Counted from the first letter of the stretch, positions 6,114 to 39,191 are shown. The stretch: DNA of 41,784 bases from Fonticula alba ATCC 38817 (GCA_000388065.2 KB932203.1), one strand, 5' to 3'. Made by a program: numbers and translations. Notes: generated by a model from the letters alone, not told the origin.

Positions 6114-6341
6114 CCCAGCCCCCAGTACAATGCCCACCCTCTCTCTCTCTCTCCCCCCCCCCCCCCCGTCCCCCCCGCCCGGGCCCCCCATGCAACGCCT
6201 CCACGCCGCACCCAAGCACCAGNNNNNNNNNNCCCAGCCCCCAGTACAATGCCCACCCTCTCTCTCTCCCCCCCCCCCCCCCCCCCGTGCCCCCAGACAG
6301 GGCCCCACATGCAACGCCTCCACGCCGCACCCAAGCACCAG
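6114..6341. repeat. Apparent ~108-nt direct duplication flanking a 10-N gap (likely overlapping contig ends)
   Basis: 6114-6222 and 6233-6341 are near-identical and differ mainly just after the poly-C run. Confidence 0.8.
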
Positions 6342-6639
6342 AATATAATAGACGCAGCGCGTGCCGCGCCGCCGGCAGTGGGATGTCTATGTGGTATATT
6401 TCGGGAAGCACAAACGAGGCTCCAAGAAGGGGTAATATAAAAAGGGAAGGAAAGGGAAGAGGGGCGGAGGAAAAAAAAGAGCCAGAAGGGAGGCCAGAAT
6501 AAGGTGCACGCTGGGAGGTGAGAAACCAAACGGAGTCACAGCCGGGAAGAGCGGAGGGGACGAGGGGAGGCTGGCAAGATGCATGGCCTCCCGCTCCCGC
6601 CCCCCCCCCCCCTCACGCGTGCCACTTCCGTCTCCTCTC

Positions 6640-9600
6640 TCAGAAGTAACCCTCGGTCCGGAAGACCCGGTTGTAGTCCAGATCGCCGCCCGACTCGTCG
6701 GTCGACTCGGCAAACTGGAAGCGGTTGAGCACCGCATGATCCGGGCTCTCGACCATCGGCACATGCGAGCTGTCCATGGCATTGAAGGGCAGCGGGTTGA
6801 TGTCGACCTCGCCGGTGACCGCCTCGCGGATGTAATCCACGGTGTTGCTGGACTCCAGGAGGTCCATGAGCTCCGGCACCTGCTGCTGGAGGATGTGCTC
6901 GTGCTCGGCCGACAGGGTGGAGAAGCTGCTCCGGCGCAGGTAGTCCGCCGACACGGAGGCCGTCTCCTGGTTGCTCACAGACCAGGCATGGGCCGACCCG
7001 AGGCTGGCCAAAGCACGCAGGATGTTCTGGTCCCGGGGGTTCAGCATGCGAGCCTCCGGCGACAGGGCGCTGACCGCCGGCGCAGAGTAGAAGGCCTCCG
7101 CCTCCGGGGAGAAGAGAGCCTGATCGCTGGCATGGGGGAGCGACGTGTCCGAGGAGCTGGGACGACGGCTCACCTCCTCGATGAAGCGCCGGCGCACGGC
7201 CAGCTGGGTCTGGGCACAGGCGTAACCCTGGCGCTCGCGCTCCATGCGGAAGAACAGCGTCGACTCGGCCTCATCAAACTCACTGCGCTGCAGCATCTTG
7301 GTCGAGGCGAAGGGAGCCATGATCAGATCCACCGAGGTGGTCGGGCGCAAGCCAAGCTCAAGGATGCGGTCCTCCTGCGCGGCGGTCTCGTTGGTGGGGA
7401 AGTGCGACCGGAAGAGATCCGCCGCGGCGGTCAGGTTGTTCAGGGACGAGGCCTCATGCGCGGCCTTGGCGAAGCGCGACGTCCGAGAGTAGGTGCTCAG
7501 CGAGGCGCGCAGATTGGCGAAGTTGTGCGGCGAGGTCTTCAGGGCCAGGTTGAAGTCCTGCAGGAAGGGCGACGCCTCGAGGGCCGGGCTGCCGGTGGCC
7601 GGCCACTCCGGCATCGGGATCTCCTTGGTGACCGGGGCATTGACAATGCCATCGGCCGAGGCGCCCGAGCCAGCCAGCCCGCCATCGGGGCTGGTGACCC
7701 CATTCGCCGTGTTCAGGGCCACGGTCAGCTGCTCCGGATCCAGCAGCCCACCAGGGAAGGCCGCGGCATCCAGCCCAGTCGCATGGGTGGCATACTGCAT
7801 CAGGTGCAGCACACTCGGGGCCGCGGCGCCGGCCGAGGCAGCCTCAACACCGGCATCGGTCGAGAAGAGGGACATCTGCTCGTCGGTCGGGCAGCCAAGG
7901 GACCGGTGCAGCTGGAACATCTCGGCCGTGGAGTAGGCCAGACGCCGGTCGGTGGCCGAGGCAAAGCCCGGGAACCGGTGGTCCTCCTCGCGCAGGAACG
8001 GACGATGCTGCACCAGCACATCGAGGATGTCCTCCGCCAGGAACCCATACAAAGCATCAACCAGGCTGACCGGCAGGGCCGCCATGGAGGGAGCCTCATT
8101 CACCCGGGCCGACAGGGCCTCCAGCTGCTCGACGCTGGTCAGCGGCATGCCATCCAGCGACAGGACATTGCCGGCGCCGACACGCTGCAGGACCATCTTC
8201 AGCACCTGCTGCGGGGTCACCAGCGAGGAGATCTGCCGAGACACCCGCGGGTCCGACAGGAGACCGGAGTGGGCCACAAAGTGCAGAGCACTGTACCGGA
8301 GCCCGGCATCGATGGCCACGGCCGAGGCCATGGCCGGATGCTCGGTCATGACCATGAGCGCGGCGCGAAGCTGCTCCGGCAGCGAGCCGGTGGCCAGGAG
8401 CGGCCCATCGGGACCCAGGGCCACCGGGCCCAGCCCCGGCAGGGTAGCCTGCGAGTCGCCGATCGAGTCGCGGAAGCGCTTGACAAAGTCGAAGTGCTGC
8501 GGGAAGAGCCCCAGCAGGGCCGACATGGCGTACGCCCCGCCGGCCGGCAGGGAGCTCGGCATGGCCAGGTGGTGGAAGGGCACCACCTGGGAAATGACGC
8601 TGCTGTTGATGAGCCCCGGGTGCAGGTCGGCCGAAGTGGCCTCCACACCATCCTCGGCCGCGGTCTGCAGGAACTTGTTGCGCACGAAGTCCGGGAACTC
8701 CTGGATCGAGCAGGAGGCCGTGTCCTGGGCAAAGGCCAGGGCGAAGTCGTGCACAAAGTTCACCGCACTCGGGCGATAGGACCCGGCCATCAGGACCGCC
8801 GTGCTCGGGGCCTGGCCCAGCAGCGGCGAACGCAGGGAGGTCCCCTGCAGGCTGGCCAGACCGGACAGCGGGCCGAAGGAGGCATACCGAGCAGCCGGAT
8901 CGGCTGCAACGCCGGCCGGCATCTGCCGGATCAGATCCTGCACCAGGCCCGAAAGCGAAGCCTTGGTATTGAGCTGGCGCATGCGGGTCTCCACGTCATC
9001 GAGCTTGCACCCGGCCAGCAGGGCCAGCATGGCGCCCGAAGCCTTGGGAGCCGGCCGGCCGATCAGCGACTCGAAGGCCGTCGGCGTGTTGATGCCGGAG
9101 GAACCGTGGACACTGTCCCAAGTGCTGTCGGCCTCGGACTCGCTGGAGTCGAAGAGCGCCAGCCCGGTGTAGCGACTGCCCGAGGCACCGGCGGGCGCAT
9201 CGCCCGGCGTGGAGAACGACTTGAGGGCACGCCCGCTCGGGACACCCCACGAGCCATGCGAGGCGCCATCCGACGCGAAGGAATCCTCGCCGGACGACGA
9301 GGAGGACAGGAAGAAGGCGGAAGTGGCCTCGTGATCGAAGTCAAGCTCCCCGGCCGGGTTGGCCGAGAGGGAGGCCGTGGCGCGCTTGAGCTCCTCCTCC
9401 TCCTTCGAAGGGAACTTCCGATCGACGAAGTTCCGGGGGTTGACATCCGGCGGGGGGATGACCGGCAGGGACTCCGAATCCGGGGTCAGGACATCCAGCG
9501 CGTAGCCGGTGCTGGTGAGCAGCCGGCGCGCCGTGCCAGCCGGCGCCGAGAACATCGGCTCGCCATTCGGCATCTTCGGAATGATCGGGCCAAACACATC

Positions 9601-12600
9601 GGAGTCCATGTCATCATCGATATCCCGCTGGATGGGGGGCGGCAGCGGGTCCGTATCGTTGAAGGTCGGATCGGCATAGTCATCGGCCGTCGAGTAGTCC
9701 AGACGGTCCAGCAGCGAGAAGAACTGCTGCATCAGGCGGGCATTGCTCAGCTGGTTGGCCGGGACATGGGGATCCGCCTCGTACTCCTTGAGCGAAGCCG
9801 ACACCGACCCCGGCAGCCGGGGGAAGTCCAGCACCGAGTGCAGGCCGGCCGTGTCGCGGAAGGGGCTGATGGTGGCCGCATCGGTCGGGGCATTGGCCTG
9901 AGACAGGCGCCGGGCCACCTCCATCGGGTGCATGCTGCTCTCCTCCAGCAGGGCACGGAACTCCTCGGTCGGGGCGAGCCCCTGGGCGAAGATGTCCGCC
10001 ACCAGCTGGTTGAAGTTGACGGCAAAGAGGTCGGCCACGGAGTGGCGGTCCGAGGAGCTCAGCTCCCCGCCCAGGGGGTAGTTCTCCGGCAGGCCGGGCA
10101 GCAGCTCCGCCAGGCTGAAGGTGTCCGTGGGCTTGGCATGCGCGGCCAGGTGCGCCAGCACCCGGAGCCAGTGCGTGAAGAGGGCCGTGTTCTCCAGGTA
10201 CAGAGGAGCGGTGAAGTTCAGCTCCGCACCGGGGAAGGGGCACCCCTCGCCCAGGGCCAGGCTCGATGGCAGACCGGAGGCCGGGGTGCCGGCCGCGGCG
10301 CCAGGCGCCACATCGGTCACCGGGTTGAAGCGAGTCATCTCCAGCGGGGAGGCATTGTCAAAGGCCAGGAACGGAGCGAAGGGGGTTCCCAGGCGCGGCT
10401 GCGCCGTGAAGAGGGTCCGGTTGACCGGGCCGGCGGCACCGGCCCAGCCATTCTGCTGGATGTCCACCAGGTGGCCAAGTCCGGCCACATAGGCAATCAT
10501 GTCGCTGACCGACTGGCGGAATTCCTCGGCCAGCAGCAGGGCCGCCCGGCTGTTGGAGAAATCGCCGAAGGAAGCCAACAGAGCCTCATACGTGTGCAGG
10601 AAGGTCAGGTCCGGATCGAAGGCCGGGCGCCGGCTGGGCTCCGGCAGGACCAGCTCCCCGGCCTGGCGCAGGGACTCCATCTCCAGGTACAGGGCACCGG
10701 TCAGGGGGAAGGCCTCCACCAGCTTGGCCAGGGAGGCGGGCATGGCCGGCGAGGGCCGGCCACCGGTCGGCGTGACGGCCGTCGGGTCCAGCACCTGCCC
10801 CTGGGGGGTCTCGGTGGCCGAGGTGGGGCTGATGATCAGCTGCAGAGCCTGGCGCTGGGTGGCGGTCAGCTCCAGGGCATCACGCGCATCGTGGTCCCGG
10901 AAGAGGGGGCTATAATGCCCGGGGTCCGTGAGCCCGGCCAGCCAGGTGAAGGAGGACTGCTCGGAGGCCGACTGAGGGCCATCCTCGTCAGACTCGCCGG
11001 CCGTGACCAGGGGCGAGGTGGCGGCGAAGCGCGCATCGAAGGCAGCCAACGAGCCGGGAACCGTGCGGAAACCGCGAGGGGCCAGCCCGGCCCCGGTCTC
11101 GGCCGCCGCCGCGCCGGTCAGCATGCCACAATGCTCGGGCAGGGACTCGGCGGCGGTGGTCAGCTCGGCGGCGGCTCCGGTCAGCGGGGAGCTGGCGGTC
11201 GGACGCTTGGCGGTGATGACGGTGGTCAGGGCACGGACGCGCTCGGCCACAATGGCATCAGCCGGGCCACTGGGCAGCTGGACCAGGAAGGAAGCCGGGC
11301 CATCCTGGCGGAAGACCTCCGGGAACCGAGGGTAGAAGGCAGCAGCCCCATTGGCGGACACCAGCGAGGCGGCCGGCTGGCCCGAGTGCACGGCCAGGGC
11401 CGGGCCAACGAGCGACTGGTCCAGGCGCTGGATCAGCGACCGGGCAAGATGCCCGGAAATGGCCGCCGGGGCCCGGTGCAGGAAGGGATGCCCCTCCACC
11501 GAGTGAACCACATGCGCGAAGAGCAAGTCCCGGAGGAGCTCGGCGCTGGTGGCCTGGCCGCTGGAAGCCACCGGCTGGTTGAGGACCTTGGCGTACTTGG
11601 AGTTGAACAGGAACTCCAGAGGGCGGTAGGACAGGGGGTCGGTCGGCAGGACCACCGGACGCTTGAACAGGTCAAAGAGCACGCTGTCGGCCACCGGGGC
11701 CAGGGACTGCTCGGTGGCAGACGCACCGGCCTCCGAGGCCGGGGCCTTGCCGGCAGCCAGCTGCTTGAACTCCGGCCGGGCCAGCAGCCCGGTCAAGGGC
11801 TCCAGCATGGCCGCCGATGAGAGGGCCGGCGACTTGGCCAGCATCATGTTGGTCAGGATGTCAGACACCACGGCCGCCTGGGCGCCAGCCGGCAGGGCAG
11901 CCACCCGATTCAGGGTCGGCAGCATGACACCATCGAACACCTGGGCAACACGCTCCAGGCCGGTGGCGCTGTGGGCCAGGTGCCGGGCATGGGGCTTCAT
12001 CGGGCTGTAGCCGTACTCCAGCAGATCAGGCCGAATGGTGCCGGGGTTGCGCAGCGAATAGCCGAGGGCCGTAGAGGCGAAGGTGTCCAGACCGCTGGCC
12101 AGCACGGAATTGACGAAAGCCACCTGGTACTGGAGCGGCGGCAGCGAGGTGTTGTAGGACACCCGGTGGTTGAAGGCCAGCTCCAGGACGTTGTCGATGT
12201 TCTCGCGGGTGATGGGCTTGAAGTCCTCGGCGAACCAGCGCAGGAGCATGGTGCTGGCGGCGGCGCGCGAGCGCTCCACCTCGAGGGCACGCTCAAGGCG
12301 CATGGCCCGGCGAGTGGCCGTGTGCACGCGCCTGGAGGGGAGAGGGGGGAGGGCATCGGGAGGGACAAGGGGAGGGTGAATGACCAGCAGGGGGAGGAGG
12401 GAGGAGGGCATCGGGAGGGCAGACGTACTGCTGGGCAAGCAGGGCCTTGTGCTTGGAGGCCCGGACACTGACCTCGGCCTGGCGGCGGGCCTTGCGCTCC
12501 AGGGCCTCAGGAGAGGTCTTGGCACGCTCCAGCTGCCGGGCCTCGCGGACCAGGCGCTTCTCGTGCATCTCCACGAGGTACTTGCGCCGCATGCGCGAGG

Positions 12601-13104
12601 CCTCCAGCGAGTACGACTGGTCCATGACATTGGGGTTGCCACTGGGCTGCAGGGGGGAAACCTCGTCCTGGTGGTCCGAAGAGGCGGAGGAAAGTGGAGG
12701 CAGGGGGGAGGAGGGGGGAGGGGGGAAAGAGAGGAAGAGACGTGAGCGGGCGGCGGCCTGGGTGCAATCCCGGGGAGGAGGCAGGAAGGAGGGACAGAGG
12801 AATGGGTGGAGACGGCGGCAGCCGCAACAGCAGCAACAGCAAAGACGGAGAGCAGGCCGGGGTGAAAGAGGCGGGACCGGGGCAAGAGGGGGTGGAGGAA
12901 GAAGGCACGCACACGCTTGATGTTCTCGCGAGTGCGCTGGATCAGGGTGTTGCGAGTGGCGAGCTTGCGCTCCTTCTCGGCCAGGCGCTTCTCGGCGAAC
13001 TGGGCGATCGACACCGACAACGGAACACGGGCATACTGGCGGGCGTGCTCCATGGGAGCGGCGGAGGCCAGCTGGCCGGCGCGGAAAATGTTGGAGGAGA
13101 GCAT
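6640..13104 (-). CDS. ~2033-aa protein: mitochondrial presequence, mitoribosomal mS26 (MRPS26)-like region (~aa 1-200), then a ~1830-aa uncharacterised extension
   Basis: Exons 13104-12913, 12646-12429 and 12331-6640 total 6102 nt, in frame, with GTGCGT/GTACGT donors. The N-terminus MLSSNIFRAGQLASAAPMEHARQYA is presequence-like. A charged helical segment is followed by KPITRENIDNVLELAFNHRVSYN, matching the recalled mS26 C-terminal motif [22 protein letters not shown]. Confidence 0.8.
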   Translation of the reverse strand: MLSSNIFRAGQLASAAPMEHARQYARVPLSVSIAQFAEKRLAEKERKLATRNTLIQRTRENIKRVRAFFLHPLLPRSRLFHPGLLSVFAVAAVAAAAVSTHSSVPPSCLLPGIAPRPPPAHVSSSLSPLPPPPPCLHFPPPLRTTRTRFPPCSPVATPMSWTSRTRWRPRACGASTSWRCTRSAWSARPGSWSVPRPLLRPWSARPAARPRSVSGPPSTRPCLPSSTSALPMPSSLLPLLVIHPPLVPPDALPPLPSRRVHTATRRAMRLERALEVERSRAAASTMLLRWFAEDFKPITRENIDNVLELAFNHRVSYNTSLPPLQYQVAFVNSVLASGLDTFASTALGYSLRNPGTIRPDLLEYGYSPMKPHARHLAHSATGLERVAQVFDGVMLPTLNRVAALPAGAQAAVVSDILTNMMLAKSPALSSAAMLEPLTGLLARPEFKQLAAGKAPASEAGASATEQSLAPVADSVLFDLFKRPVVLPTDPLSYRPLEFLFNSKYAKVLNQPVASSGQATSAELLRDLLFAHVVHSVEGHPFLHRAPAAISGHLARSLIQRLDQSLVGPALAVHSGQPAASLVSANGAAAFYPRFPEVFRQDGPASFLVQLPSGPADAIVAERVRALTTVITAKRPTASSPLTGAAAELTTAAESLPEHCGMLTGAAAAETGAGLAPRGFRTVPGSLAAFDARFAATSPLVTAGESDEDGPQSASEQSSFTWLAGLTDPGHYSPLFRDHDARDALELTATQRQALQLIISPTSATETPQGQVLDPTAVTPTGGRPSPAMPASLAKLVEAFPLTGALYLEMESLRQAGELVLPEPSRRPAFDPDLTFLHTYEALLASFGDFSNSRAALLLAEEFRQSVSDMIAYVAGLGHLVDIQQNGWAGAAGPVNRTLFTAQPRLGTPFAPFLAFDNASPLEMTRFNPVTDVAPGAAAGTPASGLPSSLALGEGCPFPGAELNFTAPLYLENTALFTHWLRVLAHLAAHAKPTDTFSLAELLPGLPENYPLGGELSSSDRHSVADLFAVNFNQLVADIFAQGLAPTEEFRALLEESSMHPMEVARRLSQANAPTDAATISPFRDTAGLHSVLDFPRLPGSVSASLKEYEADPHVPANQLSNARLMQQFFSLLDRLDYSTADDYADPTFNDTDPLPPPIQRDIDDDMDSDVFGPIIPKMPNGEPMFSAPAGTARRLLTSTGYALDVLTPDSESLPVIPPPDVNPRNFVDRKFPSKEEEELKRATASLSANPAGELDFDHEATSAFFLSSSSSGEDSFASDGASHGSWGVPSGRALKSFSTPGDAPAGASGSRYTGLALFDSSESEADSTWDSVHGSSGINTPTAFESLIGRPAPKASGAMLALLAGCKLDDVETRMRQLNTKASLSGLVQDLIRQMPAGVAADPAARYASFGPLSGLASLQGTSLRSPLLGQAPSTAVLMAGSYRPSAVNFVHDFALAFAQDTASCSIQEFPDFVRNKFLQTAAEDGVEATSADLHPGLINSSVISQVVPFHHLAMPSSLPAGGAYAMSALLGLFPQHFDFVKRFRDSIGDSQATLPGLGPVALGPDGPLLATGSLPEQLRAALMVMTEHPAMASAVAIDAGLRYSALHFVAHSGLLSDPRVSRQISSLVTPQQVLKMVLQRVGAGNVLSLDGMPLTSVEQLEALSARVNEAPSMAALPVSLVDALYGFLAEDILDVLVQHRPFLREEDHRFPGFASATDRRLAYSTAEMFQLHRSLGCPTDEQMSLFSTDAGVEAASAGAAAPSVLHLMQYATHATGLDAAAFPGGLLDPEQLTVALNTANGVTSPDGGLAGSGASADGIVNAPVTKEIPMPEWPATGSPALEASPFLQDFNLALKTSPHNFANLRASLSTYSRTSRFAKAAHEASSLNNLTAAADLFRSHFPTNETAAQEDRILELGLRPTTSVDLIMAPFASTKMLQRSEFDEAESTLFFRMERERQGYACAQTQLAVRRRFIEEVSRRPSSSDTSLPHASDQALFSPEAEAFYSAPAVSALSPEARMLNPRDQNILRALASLGSAHAWSVSNQETASVSADYLRRSSFSTLSAEHEHILQQQVPELMDLLESSNTVDYIREAVTGEVDINPLPFNAMDSSHVPMVESPDHAVLNRFQFAESTDESGGDLDYNRVFRTEGYF

Positions 13105-14288
13105 TTCCGACGGAGGGGGAGAGGGGGGAGGGGGGGGGACGCGGGATCGGGCGAACAGGCGGGGGCGGGAGGGGGAGTGAGGGAAAGGGGGGCCCTCAAA
13201 GGGGGAAGGGATCACACGGGGTCACCGGGGTGTGGAACCTCGCGCGGAGACTGACAACCGGCGGCGGCCGAACCGGAGGCAGGGCGGAGCAAGGCAGAGG
13301 GAGATGTGTGGGGCACGAGGTGGTCAGCAGGTGACGGTGACAGCGCGGCGGCGGCGGCGACGCAAGATCGGGCAGGGTACCGGGGGCCAGATGAAGGACA
13401 CCGAGGCTGGGGGCTCTCGCGTCTCGCCTTTCTCAGAGAAGGGTCAGAGGAGGGAGGGNNNNNNNNNNNNNNNNNNNNNNNNNNNNNNNNNNNNNNNNNN
13501 NNNNNNNNNNNNNNNNNNNNNNNNNNNNNNNNNNNNNNNNNNNNNNNNNNNNNNNNNNNNNNNNNNNNNNNNNNNNNNNNNNNNNNNNNNNNNNNNNNNN
13601 NNNNNNNNNNNNNNNNNNNNNNNGTGCGCTTCCACACACACAGGGGAGGACAGCGAAGACAGCGGCTAGGTCTGTCAGGCACGCAACAGAAGGAGGGGAG
13701 GAAGGGGGAGGGGGGCGAGGCGAGGAGGGAGGTAGCCTGTTGGAGCGCGGCTGCCCGGGGACGCCAGGGGCGCGCGGCATCGTCCGAAAAAGGCCAGCAA
13801 AAGCCCTCGCGTCCTTGGCGCGCGGTCCGGCGATGAGAGGCAGGCTTCGGGGATGGGCAGGCGGGGGGGGGGGGCATGGCAGGCCACCGTGCGCCAGGTC
13901 CGTGCGGACTGGCTGCCGCCCGCGCGGGTCGGGCGTGGGCTCGCGCCAGACTCCCCCGGGCAGGGCGGGCCGGGCGGAGGCGGGCCCTGCCCGCGCGCGC
14001 GCGGCGGGGGGGGGGGGGGGGGGGGCAATGCTGACCTCGCTCCGGCAACCGCTTGCCCCGTACCAGGCTCCGCGGTGACGAAACCTAAAGCCCACGCCGT
14101 TGAGGCCCGGTGTGTGGCCCGAGCACGCGCGTGCGCGTGCGATCTCTCAGCATTGTTCGATCCCCCACAAGCCAGACTAGCGCCCGCCCTGGAGACCCCC
14201 CGCCTCCTGCGCGCCCGGGAACCGGACGACGGTGTCGGCCCCACGCACATGCCCGGCCGGCGCGAGGGGGGCCAAATGCGTGGGGCAC

Positions 14289-18135: not shown

Positions 18136-18804
18136 GTGGGGCAAGAGCAGCNNNNNNNNNNNNNNNNNNNNNNNNNNNNNNNNNNNNNNNNNNNNNNNNN
18201 NNNNNNNNNNNNNNNNNNNNNNNNNNNNNNNNNNNNNNNNNNNNNNNNNNNNNNNNNNNNNNNNNNNNNNNNNNNNNNNNNNNNNNNNNNNNNNNNNCCC
18301 CCCCCCCCCGCGCGGTGTGTACGTGAAAAAAAGAACCGACAAAGGCCGGGGTGTTTCGTATTGCTTTATTGGTTTTGGGGTTGGTGTGTGCGTGCGTGCG
18401 TGCGTGCGTACATGTGTGCAGGGGGGGGGGGGGGCATACGCACGCATGGGCGCATCTGCACCACAAGAGGGGACATGGCCTCGAGTGATGGTGGCTCTCC
18501 ATCGCGGGTGTTGGGCTGAGCGTGTGCGTTTTCCCTCTCTTCCTCGTCTGTGAGGTGAGGGGAGAGAAGGAATAATCGGAGAGGAGGGACAGCGGAAGGG
18601 AGGGGGGGGGGTGCTAGAGAGCTGGGGGCCAGTCGGGGAGAGGAGGATGTGTACTGTGAGGGGGAGGGGGGAGGGGGGAGGGGGCGCCCTCTGAGGCCCC
18701 CGCAATCCCTGGAGGGGGTGGTGCGCGCGCGCGACCGAAGGGGAGAGAGGGATCACACGCTGTCCGCATGACGGCACACGGGGGGGGGGGGGGCGGATAC
18801 ATGC

Positions 18805-20181
18805 TTACAGACCGAGAGCAAGAGACTTCTTAATCTCAGCAATGGCCTTGGCGGGGTTGAGACCCTATGTTGGCGGCGGATGCGAGGAGAGGGACGGAGG
18901 GAGGAGGGGTGCATATGTGTAAGTACGCCATCGGTGCCGAGGGAGGGAGAAAGTAGCGCAAAAGAGGGGAGAGAGAGAGGGGGGGGGAGAGAGGGATCTC
19001 AAAGGAGGGGCGCGCACCTTCGGGCAAGTACGAGTGCAGTTGAGAATGGTGTGGCAGCGGTAGAGGGAGAACGGGTCCTTCAGGGCGGCGCGGCGCTCGG
19101 TACCGAAGTCGTCACGGCTGTCGATCNNNNNNNNNNNNNNNNNNNNNNNNNNNNNNNNNNNNNNNNNNNNNNNNNNNNNNNNNNNNNNNNNNNNNNNNNN
19201 NNNNNNNNNNNNNNNNNNNNNNNNNNNNNNNNNGAGACCATCGAGCTTGGCACGGTCCTCACGCGACTGGAGGTTCTCCTGCTTCAGGTCGGTGGGGGGG
19301 TTCTTCTGCTTGAGCCAGGGCTCGATCTTGCTGTACTGCTCGTAGAAGTGGGTCATGTCCTGGGAGGGGAGGGAGCGGGAGCGGGAGGGGGAGCCGGAGC
19401 GGTGGGGGGGGGGGAGAGGAAGGGCAAGTACATATGTGAGTGGGAGGGGGAGGAGAGCAGGCGTGCCCAGAGGGCGTGTGCTGGAAGAAAGAGCAGGCAC
19501 ACAGAAGCAGGAGAGGGAAGGGGGCAGGGAGGAAGTGACATCTACGCACCGGGACCAGATCCTTGATCACATACATGTGGGGGAGGGGGTAGATGGTGAC
19601 CGGCTTGCTGGTGTCGATCTTGCACAGGCAGGCCAGGGTGTTGGTGCCGTTGATGTTCATGGCACAGGAGCCGCAAATGCCCTCGCGGCAGGAGCGACGG
19701 AAGGACAGGGTGGAGTCCATCTCGTCCTTGACCTGGATCAGGGCATCGAGGACCATCGGGCCGCAGGTGTCCATGTCGACCTTGTACTCCTGGAGGCGGG
19801 GCTTATCACCGGCGACCTCGGGGTTCTGGACACAGGGTCGAGGGGAGGAGGAGGCAGAGGGAATGGGTGAGATTGCGATGCAGGGGGTATGGGGGAGGGG
19901 GAGAGGAGCCAATGCAATCGAGCGAGAGGCACAAAGGCACGTGTGGGGGGGGGGAGGAAAGCAAAAGAGGGAGACAGAGGGAGGTGGGGCGATGGAGGAT
20001 GCACGCGCGAAGACAAACGCACCCAGCGGTAGATGTTGAAGGAGTGGGTGTTCTTCTTCGGGGCCTCCGGGGTGGCGGCGGCCTGAGAAGCGGCGGCCGA
20101 GGTGTGGAAGGCGCGGGCAGCGACGGCACCGAAGCCGGGACGGAAGGTGCCAAAGGCAGAGCGGGCGAGGGTGGGGAGCAT
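18805..20181 (-). CDS. SDHB: Succinate dehydrogenase iron-sulfur subunit, mitochondrial
   Basis: Presequence [16 protein letters not shown] is followed by [84 protein letters not shown]. The second Cys cluster falls inside the 107-N gap at 19127-19233. Confidence 0.97.
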
Positions 20182-21941: not shown

Positions 21942-22625
21942 TGTGGGCGTGTCGACTCGGAATATTCCAATCATTATCAAAGCCTCAATTTCTCGGAGCT
22001 CTGATCAACCTTGGCCGGCCCCCACGAAGGTTCACCAGATCCGCTGGGCTTCTGTGCCCATGGATTCTGATCACAAAGATCACAACAACACTCCATTCTT
22101 AAACAGAGAATCATCACGCGACCCCGGGCGGATCCCCTCCACCGCGCACGCATTTCCCCTGGTCCTATTTCGGGGCCTTTTTTTTTTATCCTCCGTTGCC
22201 CCGCGTACATGCAGCGCACCTTGTTTGTCCGCTCCNNNNNNNNNNNNNNNCCCCCCCCCGTGCCTCCATTGTGCGGCCACTCTCCATCGAGGCGCTGGGA
22301 ACCGGCGCTTGGCCAGCCTTTCTGCTGCCCGGTTTTCTCGCCCGCTAAGAGACAGTCCAGGAGCCTGGGATCTACGATCGGTCGCCAGCCAATACCCCTC
22401 TCTCCCCCTCCCTGTCGCCCCTTTGATGTGAGTCCTGTTACTGCTTCTTGCCCCTCCCCCTCCTCCTCCCTCCCCCCTCCCCCCCCGTGTCGCCCCGCCT
22501 AACACCCCTACCCATTCTCGTGCTGGTGCCTGCCCCATCTCGTCCCTTCTATTTGTGGCATTCCCATCTCTCTGCCCTCGCGCTCAGAGAGCTGCGGTGT
22601 TTTTGCGTCAAACGGCAAGCGTACC

Positions 22626-29262: not shown

Positions 29263-30352
29263 CAGACCGGCAAGCAAGCAGCAGGGTGAGATCTAAGACC
29301 AAAGAGCAAGTTACAGGGGGGGGGGGGGCACAGTGAGAGGGGGCCCAAGGATGGCAGGAGGAGGAGGAGGAGGGAGAAGGGAAGGAGGAGAAGGGGGAGG
29401 GCGCGATGCGGGGCGCCAGGCGTGGAGCACCTGGCTGTGGTCCGCCCCCTTTTGGAGGAGGCACGGGGCGAGCGGCGTCCCGTAGGAAAGGGTGGCGGCT
29501 GGTTGCATGCTTGATCGGGCTGCGAGCCGGATGCCAAGGGTAGCACCGGGGGTCTGTCCTGCCCGAGATCCGGGCCTCCTTCCCCCCCCCCCCCCCGCCC
29601 CCGCCTAGCCCGAGGGGATTCCCGTGCCCCATCCATCGCACGATCGTGAAGAGCATCCCGTGGGGGGGGGGGGGGGGGGCGATCCCCAATCATGGGCACC
29701 TCGTTTTATGTCCCACAGACACTCACACACACGCACGTACACACCGACGCAGGCGCACAATGGGGGACATGCGCACGCAGACGCGGACGTGCCCCATCCG
29801 GGATGGATTCCTCTACCCGCCCGCACTCCCGCCAGTGTTCCCTGCGAACCTGGCGCCCAGATCGTTACCCATCCATCGGTCGGCGCGAGGGCGCTCCGAC
29901 CCTGTGCTGCCAAACGGGAGTCCCCTGCGGCCTGGGAACGCCCGGGACCAAGCGGCATCGATCTTCTCCCTCTCCTCCCTCCCCCTCTGCCTCCACCCGA
30001 ATTTCACCCTGCTCCCCCCCCCCTCAAACGGCAGGGCCCGCCGGCCGGACGACCGGCCGATGGGACAAGGGCATGCACATCTCCGGATGCGCAGCCGGGC
30101 GGGCGGGGGGGGGGGGGGGCGATCCCTGGCCTGCTTGNNNNNNNNNNNNNNNNNNNNNNNNNNNNNNNNNNNNNNNNNNNNNNNNGTACCTCCGTCGAGT
30201 GGTTCCGCCACGCCAGGCGCACGCGCCTCTTCTCACCAAGGGCCACGACGGCTTGAGAGGGAGGAGAACACACGCGACCGCTTCGCACCTTGCACGGTGT
30301 CGACTCTCGCCTTCTCACTCTCCTTTTGTCGCCTTCTGCCGGTGTGAACGCC

Positions 30353-35439: not shown

Positions 35440-36443
35440 TCAGTTGGACTTCTTGGCAGCGGCGGCGGCGGTGGTGGTGGCCTCGCCGGAGGCAACGGCC
35501 GAGGACTTGGCCTGCTCGGCAGCCAGCTGGCGCTGCTTCTCCAGGCGCTTCTTCTCCAGGGGAGGAAGGTCGTTCGGGTGGAGGTGAGTGCCGCAGAGGC
35601 GATCCCAGAAGGTGAAGAACTGGCCGTAGTTGTAGACGAAGCGCAGGTGATGGTGGGTGTGGTGGGCCTGTGTGTCGAGCAGAGGGCATGCATGTGCGTG
35701 TGCGTGTGCGTTTGTCAGTAGTCCGGGTAGCGTCATGCGGGGGGGAAGGGGGGGGGAACAAAAGAAAGGGAAGAGGAGCCGCGAGGAGGACAGGACGCAC
35801 GGAGCCGTTGATGAAGTCGAAGGGGCTGAAGTCAACACCATCATGGATCATGATGGTCCAGAGCTGGACAAAGACGAAGAGGCCCAGGTACACATGCTTG
35901 TGCACAGGGAACAGGAAGACCGCAATGTGGTAGGGGGTGGACTGGAGCCAGCCGTCGACCGGGTGGAAAGCCAGCGCGGCGAAGGGGGTCGGCACCTTCC
36001 AGATGTGGTGGGGCTTGTGCACATACTTGTAGAGGAAGGGGATGTCATGCTCCAGGCGGTGGATCCAGTAGATGCCGGTGTCGGTGAAGAAGATGAAGAG
36101 GATGATCTGCACCGGGATATACCAGAGCGGGTAGTCAGAGAGGTTCTCATACAGCCGGGAGTAGCCCCACACCTCGAGGAAGACGAAGGGGGCGGTCAGG
36201 ACACCGATCCACGGGCACGACCAGAGGGCCATCTGAATCTCGCTGTGGGTGCATCAGTGCATGGGTGCATGGGTGCCGGGGGCGGGGGGGGNNNNNNNNN
36301 NNNNNNNNNNNNNNNNNNNNNNNNNNNNNNNNNNNNNNNNNNNNNNNNNNNNNNNNNNNNNNNNNNNNNNNNTTGCGCCACACACGCACTTACACATGCA
36401 CATACGGGGGGGGGGGGCACAGTGAGAGGGGGCCCAAGGATGG

Positions 36444-36788: not shown

Positions 36789-37444
36789 GTTGGCAGGGGG
36801 GGGGGGCGGGAGTGGGTGGGGACGAGTAGCACGGAGATGTGCGACTCGACGGAGGGGAGGAAAACACCGGGCGGGGAGGAGAAGGGAGGTAGGGGGTGAG
36901 GGCGGCGGTGTGGTCTGGAGGTGGGGGAAGATCTCTTCCCTGCGCGGCGTCGCGGTTCGCCTTGTTCCCTCGGTCCATGTCCCCTGCATGTGTGGGAGGG
37001 TGGGAGCACCACCGTGGCCGGGGGACCTCACGCAATCCTCGCGAGGCCACACGGGCGGGTGTGCCCGTTCAGCCTGCGAAGAAAGTCGGACGGGCCCAGA
37101 TGCTGGGAGACCGGGATGGCCCGGGTTACGGGGAATTGTGCAGGTGGCTGCGCCGTTTACGATGGCAGTGGCGGCGGCGGTGGCGGCGCAACGGCAGCAG
37201 CGCAGCGGCGTCGGCGCGTCAGCCGCGGCCCGGCCGCGGCCCACCCGTGCTCACACACAAGGGGCATCCAGCTGGCAGATCCCGCGATGGCGGTCCGGCC
37301 TGATGGCAAGCCGTGCGGGCCCGGCCCTGGTGGGCACGCTCGACCCCACCCGCCAGCGCAGGGGACCGCTGGGACACCGAGGTCCGGCCTCCAAAGGCGC
37401 GGGCATGCTTGCACGCTCGGCGGGCGGCCAACGGAGGGGGGGGG

Positions 37445-37914
37445 NNNNNNNNNNNNNNNNNNNNNNNNNNNNNNNNNNNNNNNNNNNNNNNNNNNNNNNN
37501 NNNNNNNNNNNNNNNNNNNNNNNNNNNNNNNNNNNNNNNNNNNNNNNNNNNNNNNNNNNNNNNNNNNNNNNNNNNNNNNNNNNNNNNNNNNNNNNNNNNN
37601 NNNNNNNNNNNNNNNNNNNNNNNNNNNNNNNNNNNNNNNNNNNNNNNNNNNNNNNNNNNNNNNNNNNNNNNNNNNNNNNNNNNNNNNNNNNNNNNNNNNN
37701 NNNNNNNNNNNNNNNNNNNNNNNNNNNNNNNNNNNNNNNNNNNNNNNNNNNNNNNNNNNNNNNNNNNNNNNNNNNNNNNNNNNNNNNNNNNNNNNNNNNN
37801 NNNNNNNNNNNNNNNNNNNNNNNNNNNNNNNNNNNNNNNNNNNNNNNNNNNNNNNNNNNNNNNNNNNNNNNNNNNNNNNNNNNNNNNNNNNNNNNNNNNN
37901 NNNNNNNNNNNNNN
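37445..37914. other. Largest assembly gap (470 N). Other gaps: 6223-6232, 13459-13623, 18152-18297, 19127-19233, 22236-22250, 30138-30185, 36292-36372
   Basis: N runs, mostly bordered by poly-G/C or (CA)n tracts. Confidence 0.99.
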
Positions 37915-39118
37915 ACACACACACACACACACACACACAGACACACACAGACACACACACACACACACACACGTTGCCCGACCCTTGCGGCTGGCTCCCC
38001 CCTTTGGATTCCTCCATTTCTGGCCCTGCCACTCCCCGCGGGGACCGGACGGGCGCCGGCGCATCACCCGCACACGCGGCGCCCAGGTGGCGGAGAATGC
38101 ACGCCATCGCCTGGCGCATGCACCGGGGCCGGTGCGCGTCAGAGCGTTGGGCGCACCCAGGCGATGGCCTGATGCTGGGCCCCCTCGGTGGTACGGTTGG
38201 CGGGGGGGGGGGGGCCAGGCGGTGCCTGCTCTCCGGCCCGCATCCCCGCCAGGACCAATCAGCTGGTTTTCCCGGCTCCGGCGCATGCCCGAACACACGG
38301 GCCCCTTAAAAACGGCCAGGTAAACCACACCCACCCACGCACCCTCACATACCCTGCTGGTGTCCAGGCTCCCGGCCTGGGGGCGGCTAGGGCGCACTGT
38401 TGCTGTGAACGCCCCCGGGGCTCCCTCCCCCCATGCAGGGCCAGCCCCGGCAGCTCCTGGTTGCCCCGCCCTCGCGCAGAGGCATGTTGCTCAAGCCGGG
38501 TGTATGCCGCGCGACCCTGGGGCCGTGGTCCTCCTAGCTCCCCTCCGGAAAGCGTGTGTATGCCGCGCGCATCGCGCCGCGTCTTCCACACGGGCGGCGC
38601 ATGCGAGGTCGGTGCCCGCGCGGCGGCCTCGAGGGGCCCCCCCCCGTCGGCAGGAGTCCCTGGTCGGAGACGGCCCGCGAGGGCGGGGGAGGATGCATCG
38701 ACGCTTTCCCCGCCCGTGTGCCCGGACACGACCGACACGCAGGAACACCCCCACCATGGTAAACCCTGCCACGGCCCTCGGAGCCGGCCGGGGACGCGCC
38801 GACATCGATCGGACGGAGCTGCCTCGGCCGACAGGGGCCGGCACGGGTCCGAGCCCGGTCGACCCCTTCTCTTCGCGCCGACACGCGTGTGGCTGGCCCC
38901 GACGACAGACGGCCTGGCCGGGCCGGGCCGAGCCGCGGCACGGTGCCCCCTTGCTGCCCCTTTTTCAGGGAAGGCCGGAGGGCCGGCTTCTTCGGCATGC
39001 GGTGGGCGGCCGAAAAAAATCGGCCTCCACACATGCGTCCCCCTGCCGGAAATTTTTGGCAGGGTTCCTTCTTCAGCGAGAATATATGGCCTTATGGAAC
39101 CCTGATTTCCATGAATCC

Positions 39119-39191
39119 GGGGGCGTAGCTCAAATGGTAGAGCGGCCGCTTAGCATGCGGCAGGCAGGGGGATCGATACCCTCCGCCTCCA
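39119..39191 (+). tRNA. tRNA-Ala(AGC), intronless
   Basis: 73-nt cloverleaf. The acceptor stem GGGGGCG/CGCCTCC has the G3:U70 alanine identity pair and discriminator A73. The anticodon arm is GCCGC-TT-AGC-AT-GCGGC. The T-loop ATCGATA has A54, as is usual for eukaryotic Ala-AGC. Confidence 0.97.

Follow-up and report, generated by a model that had tools for sequence, protein, structure and literature searches.

The gene H696_02514 lies on the minus strand of a 41,784-nucleotide (nt) stretch of the Fonticula alba ATCC 38817 genome (the whole stretch is referred to here as the window), where it occupies positions 13104..6640 as one gene of three exons. Its product of 2040 amino acids (aa) consists of a basic, helical N-terminal module, probably the mitochondrial small-subunit ribosomal protein mS26, followed by a long acidic tail for which we detected no relative. 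In the public record of the F. alba genome (31.3 Mb, 214 contigs, ~67% GC), the gene is labeled "hypothetical protein" and carries no precomputed Pfam domain, and we found no mention of H696_02514 in the literature.

A scan of the window for open reading frames (ORFs) found a stop-free frame at 13215..6640 on the minus strand. The start ATG (13104..13102) opens exon 1 (12913..13104), which encodes aa 1–64, comprising a presequence-like start and the beginning of a basic helix. Intron 1 (12668..12912; 245 nt, GTGCGT...CAG) separates it from exon 2 (12429..12667; 239 nt), which lies between the two RNA joints described below and continues the helix, rich in R, K and E, through aa 65–143 and two bases of codon 144. 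After intron 2 (12332..12428; 97 nt, GTACGT...CAG), exon 3 (6640..12331) extends over 5692 nt, including the stop codon (6642..6640), and encodes aa 144–2040. The product of the three joined exons, checked for frame and length, is letter-identical to the public H696_02514 protein. An earlier note on this DNA, made from the sequence alone, had proposed a protein about ten times the usual size of mS26, and a 2040-aa product of one gene bears this out.

Transcript data confirmed that the gene is real and expressed, as one assembled spliced transcript. The data came from four RNA runs (X1–X4) of one 2012 study, with contigs compared over positions 7250–13249. Contigs of X1–X3 were 6187–6195 nt long, started at 13115–13123, ran through 7250 and continued for 663 letters further, to ~6587. 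The minimum 5′ untranslated region is thus 13105..13121, and the letters beyond 7250 would put the minimum 3′ untranslated region at 6587..6639. These contigs contained exactly two joints, 12912/12666 (supported in four runs) and 12428/12330, both CT..AC on the plus strand and so GT..AG on the minus strand, and all four runs had contigs that lacked each intron; the joints therefore identify the runs as cDNA and the RNA as minus-strand. Comparison with 7250–12330 showed no gaps and no differing letters. The four runs contained 92% of the sampled words of 6640–13215, as expected for a spliced mRNA that lacks both introns and the 111 nt upstream.

The earlier note had described exon 3 as a single 5.7-kb exon without stop or intron down to 6640, and the X1–X3 contigs agree, crossing from the mS26-like part into the extension with no joint. 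It had also considered a split of the frame by a poly(A) site, or by an unrecognized intron with a stop, near 12100; the same contigs contain no stop, intron or break there. We consider it very improbable that the assembler and annotator merged two genes, one producing a short mS26 mRNA ending near 12100 and the other carrying the long ORF. Contigs, being assembled, are no proof of a single RNA molecule, all four runs derive from one study, and in X4 the RNA is broken at 11817–11833, with a depth of 13.8 for the 5′ piece and 24 for the 3′ piece. However, this break adjoins short words common to other contigs, as is typical of an assembly-graph branch, and we read it as one. X1–X3 each give one contig, the frame stays open and in phase past the mS26 motif, where no stop codon could end a short product, and codon usage is unchanged along its length.

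The coding character of the long frame is uniform. GC content at codon positions 1, 2 and 3 is 0.68, 0.50 and 0.88, respectively, and at third positions (GC3) it stays at 0.84–0.90 in each of ten 200-codon blocks (the GC content of intron 1 is 0.68), as the earlier note had seen in a bias toward C/G-ending codons throughout; three-base periodicity is alike in the tail and the N-terminus. Since GC3 is high in every block, we regard the frame as coding throughout and not as one left open by chance in GC-rich DNA. A plus-strand ORF of 1745 aa (6583..11820) was rejected as a gene because it mirrors the GC3-rich minus-strand frame: its codons begin at the real gene's GC-rich third positions, which makes stop codons, all of them T-initial, rare in it, and intron polarity assigns the RNA to the opposite strand.

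The N-terminal module (aa 1–~210; 12133..13104, with both introns inside) is quite likely the F. alba mS26. We searched seven cuts of the protein against 24,736 Pfam models, and MRP-S26 (PF14943) was the top match for every cut; the sole other Pfam matches were at chance level (Amidase, E 0.97 and 3.2; V_ATPase_I, E 7.2). The score was 12.6 bits for the whole frame, 17.1 bits (E 0.005) for the first 100 aa of exon 3, 17.5 bits for aa 60–215, in which aa 92–206 aligned collinearly with profile positions 44–161 of 168, and 20.3 bits (E 5.4e-4) for aa 140–215, in which aa 143–206 aligned with profile positions 100–161. The alignment stops at aa 206, seven positions short of the profile end. Close to that end lies the C-terminal mS26 signature ITRENIDNVLELAFNHRVSYN (aa 184–204; 12151..12213, minus strand), an ITREN ... 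YN pattern that follows the long basic helix at the end of the domain and aligns with profile positions 138–161 and with the human mS26 chain 6nu2_AU. The earlier note had located this motif at the correct genomic coordinates (12213..12151); its residue count was ~7 aa short because the acceptor that it apparently used for exon 2 lies 21 nt downstream of the true one.

Further observations bear on this assignment. The only matches among PDB sequences were mS26 chains, 6nu2_AU and 9ojm_U (173–176 residues), at E ~7 and near their C-terminal end, and the aligned stretch of the human chain, residues 111–165, includes the ITRENIDNVLELAFNHRVSYN counterpart. The module has an isoelectric point (pI) of 10.9 and a net charge of +17. 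By residue count, its first 18 residues include no acidic residue and its first 30 include three R/K. AlphaFold predicted long helices over aa 30–179 with a predicted local distance difference test score (pLDDT) of 60–79. A six-frame search of the 31.3-Mb genome with PF14943, a profile that performs poorly on genes split into exons, yielded a single scored candidate, which did not reach E <= 0.001; the absence of another or better candidate in that search is soft evidence. A pan-eukaryotic survey found mS26 to be near-universal yet hard to detect owing to fast divergence (10.64898/2026.10.06.756942).

Identification of the module as mS26 has to be weighed against the possibility that a basic helix rich in R, E and A resembles the low-information MRP-S26 profile by chance, in which case H696_02514 would encode a large orphan protein with an unrelated role. 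The earlier note's assignment stands in that PF14943 is the consistent top match and falls short in score, which at 10.5–20.3 bits never reached the curated gathering cut-off of 27 bits; the lowest value (E 0.58) was obtained when more of the N-terminus was included, as aa 1–215. Exons 1 and 2 alone had no match in Pfam or PDB sequences, aa 1–215 had none in a word search, a phmmer search of the PDB or the ESM atlas, and aa 160–215 had none in the phmmer search of the PDB. In a fold search of the helical N-terminus (VIA-align, 48,161 chains), the only matches were generic helical hairpins at Z 8–9.5; long helices do not discriminate between families. We nevertheless judge a chance resemblance quite unlikely: one profile led all the Pfam models for seven separate cuts, with E down to 5e-4, the five-residue ITREN core and YN are correctly spaced from the profile end, with a spacing from the N-terminus equal to that in the 205-aa human protein, and the six-frame PF14943 search of the genome offered no other candidate for a near-universal protein. 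The mS26 assignment, new for a protein that is uncharacterized in the public record, is thus below threshold and probable.

Directly after this module the protein changes sharply in character: at aa ~210 the pI shifts from 10.9 to 4.9. The tail (aa 211–2040; 6643..12132) comprises 1,830 residues (~193 kDa) with a net charge of −80 and is rich in A, L, S and P. The earlier note had recognized no domain in this extension, and searches of Pfam, PDB sequences, words, phmmer and the ESM atlas agreed. Across the whole protein, Pfam gave nothing besides MRP-S26 at E <= 1, and the tail matched no PHROG and no PDB sequence. The tail had no paralog in the F. alba genome and no relative in JGI metagenome contigs or the ESM atlas, and a word search with exon 3 returned only the gene itself. 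Exhaustive phmmer of aa 841–2040 against 1.84 billion representatives likewise found self only, and aa 216–840, which lay outside that phmmer search, had no relative in word-based or pattern searches. On the basis of these comparisons, the tail is most likely lineage-specific.

The tail contains no hydrophobic segment (maximum Kyte–Doolittle mean over 19 residues, 1.37), and a membrane anchor was rejected. Self-BLAST at E <= 10 found no internal repeats; with neither a repeat profile nor an internal repeat, and a pI of 4.9, a helical-repeat mitochondrial RNA-binding factor of the PPR, HEAT-like or mTERF kind is not supported. The earlier note had offered, besides expansion of the mitoribosome, a fusion with a mitochondrial RNA-processing or assembly factor, or a polyprotein; the tail showed no match to any known factor. 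Single-sequence AlphaFold2 models had a mean pLDDT of 38.5 for aa 1–1200 and 36.9 for aa 1201–2040, too low to be usable for the tail.

Comparable architectures appear on other small-subunit proteins of the same genome, compared here at the level of ORFs. For mS29, a DAP3 P-loop exon (GPVGSGKS; 20.6 bits) lies 0.9 kb upstream of a 2196-aa ORF on the same, plus strand (exons and ORF at L006:1620-9382, equivalent to G000:C4:2715619-2723381; Pfam and ORF evidence), which may encode its tail. That ORF has no Pfam match, a pI of 5.2, a GC3 of 0.80 and nearly the residue make-up of the mS26 tail; homology between the mS26 and mS29 tails was rejected, as the sequences are unrelated. For uS2m, a C-terminal uS2 motif and ~870 unmatched residues share one 967-aa ORF on the minus strand (L013:1343-4246, equivalent to G000:C11:276842-279745), with upstream uS2 exons at L013 4346-4892. 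The occurrence of giant tails on other small-subunit proteins favors expansion over the fusion and polyprotein options. Separately, a uS10 domain (72 bits) was observed inside a 1012-aa open frame (L011, equivalent to G000:C1:2119792-2123040), either a real extension or GC-rich read-through. In six-frame searches of the genome, PF10484 (mS23) had no match and DAP3 matched solely below its cut-off; from such profile searches, supernumerary mitoribosomal proteins of F. alba appear to be generally hard to detect.

Mitochondrial small-subunit ribosomal RNA (rRNA) of F. alba is full size. It spans 1609 nt on the minus strand of an AT-rich contig (L017:1501-3109, equivalent to G000:C214:4584-6192), where it is flanked by six tRNA genes, and it matches the bacterial model over positions 1–1533 (772.7 bits). 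Because that model is covered from 1 to 1533, the added protein does not replace lost rRNA, and we rejected compensation for a reduced rRNA as an explanation of the tail.

Taken with the mS26 assignment, the most likely reading of these results is a lineage-specific expansion of a ribosome-anchored mS26 whose tail is retained, to which we give about an even chance. Under this proposal, one nuclear gene would produce a 2040-residue precursor, the basic helical first ~210 residues of which are mS26; the precursor would be imported into mitochondria, and the mS26 module would dock on the 1.6-kb small-subunit rRNA as it does elsewhere in eukaryotes. The acidic, soluble tail would stay attached as a peripheral mass of ~190 kDa on the mRNA-exit side of the small subunit, where it could be a scaffold on which mRNA-handling or assembly partners dock, or else neutrally accreted ballast. 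mS26 would then be among several F. alba small-subunit proteins with giant tails. Import, retention, position and any role of the tail are all inferred here.

The proposed position draws on mS26 in other lineages. In Neurospora, mS26 extends along the channel for mRNA as far as the exit, where it touches the mRNA, and its N-terminus is near h14 (10.1101/2020.01.31.929331); in plants it bounds the exit cleft (10.1101/777342), and in Tetrahymena it belongs to a protein-rich extension of the body (PMC8998825). Given these solved-structure positions, the C-terminal end of F. alba mS26, and hence its tail, would be expected on the mRNA-exit side. In human cells, few knockouts harm small-subunit abundance as much as the loss of mS26 does (PMC11251090). 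Being acidic, the F. alba tail is less likely to bind RNA directly than to scaffold proteins or to have accreted neutrally. Yeast PET123, which encodes mS26, interacts genetically with PET122, which encodes a translational activator of COX3 (we found no open-text statement of this interaction); this would suit a docking role. A broader version of the proposal, which we regard as tentative and rather doubtful, is that the F. alba small subunit as a whole is hypertrophied, independently of kinetoplastids and ciliates: mS26, mS29 and uS2m would carry mutually unrelated, acidic, retained tails amounting to several thousand residues on a full-size rRNA, and the mS26 tail would act as an mRNA recruitment platform at the exit.

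The abrupt change of pI at aa ~210, together with the end of the mS26 profile match at aa 206, also suits a different outcome, in which the precursor is cut near aa 210 after import to yield an mS26 of ordinary size and a free, acidic matrix protein of 190 kDa. The precursors of yeast Atp25 and of Arg5,6 provide precedents for such processing. Yet the tail has no relative, so that no free-standing counterpart was detected, and a single fusion event would leave unexplained the same architecture on other small-subunit proteins; we consider cleavage unlikely.

Returning to a retained tail, several observations weigh against that reading. The points raised above about subthreshold profile scores, empty searches with the N-terminal exons, non-specific fold matches and contigs from one study all count here. 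In addition, its acidity sets the tail apart from typical extensions of ribosomal proteins, and it is predicted to form helices and coil with no strands, at pLDDT < 50. Finally, mS35, bL19m and bL17m occupy frames of ordinary size, although this is a small sample and frame length is a crude proxy.

Elsewhere in the window, the sole Rfam match is a nuclear tRNA gene on the plus strand (39119-39191; RF00005, 57 bits). GC content is 0.38 at 37001-38000, which is partly N-masked, and 0.56–0.73 over the rest. Runs of N occupy 13459-13623, 6223-6232, 18152-18297, 19127-19233, 22236-22250, 30138-30185, 36292-36372 and 37445-37914; because the first of these lies ~340 nt upstream of the transcript start, the promoter region of H696_02514 is not fully readable.

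The F. alba protein shares with mS26 of animals (MRPS26) and yeast (Pet123) a presequence-like start, a long basic helix rich in R, K and E, and the C-terminal ITREN...YN; it differs from mS26 elsewhere in its length of 2040 aa and in the 193-kDa acidic tail directly after the motif. The human mS26 precursor has ~205 aa, and its chain in solved structures has 173–176 aa. In Andalucia, mS26 has 168 aa (PMC7947838).

Mitoribosomal proteins of very large size are known from other lineages, including mS48 (1788 aa) and mS49 (1181 aa) of kinetoplastids and mS78 of ciliates (PMC8998825). These have no homologs outside their lineage and form peripheral mass on the small subunit, as the F. alba tail would. 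They also differ in being separate new proteins on ribosomes with reduced or rearranged rRNA; in F. alba, an opisthokont with full-size rRNA, the added sequence is fused to a conserved core protein. Also comparable, at the level of ORFs, are mS29 and uS2m of F. alba itself, each with a conserved module followed by orphan sequence of hundreds to ~2,100 residues; the putative mS29 tail, though unrelated in sequence to that of mS26, is likewise acidic, with A, L, S and P abundant.

A different kind of likeness is offered by yeast Atp25, whose precursor is cleaved into a half that acts in ribosome assembly and a half that stabilizes mRNA. As in H696_02514, one mitochondrial precursor would join a module associated with the ribosome to a long second part that evolves fast; the two proteins share no sequence similarity, however, and Atp25 acts on the large subunit. 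The ribosome-bound part of Atp25 has been seen in a solved structure (10.1101/2020.01.31.929331).

Overall, H696_02514 most likely belongs to a known kind, the lineage-specific mitoribosomal expansion, with three unusual traits: the product is larger than mS48, the added sequence is fused to a core protein, and the organism is an opisthokont whose rRNA is full size. Most known cases of mitoribosomes that have grown within one lineage come from kinetoplastids, ciliates and apicomplexans, and the usual explanation is that protein patches lost rRNA. Here, a close relative of fungi with a full-size small-subunit rRNA appears to fuse ~190 kDa of new protein to a core protein lining the mRNA exit. 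Whatever the fate of the tail, the mS26 assignment adds an annotation to a "hypothetical" public record. Should the tail be removed by cleavage, H696_02514 would be a new example of a mitochondrial polyprotein. If it stays on the ribosome, F. alba mS26 (2040 aa) would surpass mS48 (1788 aa), the largest mitoribosomal protein on record, and if the tails are generally retained, Fonticula would offer a test of how protein accretes when no rRNA has been lost, in which constructive neutral evolution could be weighed against function.

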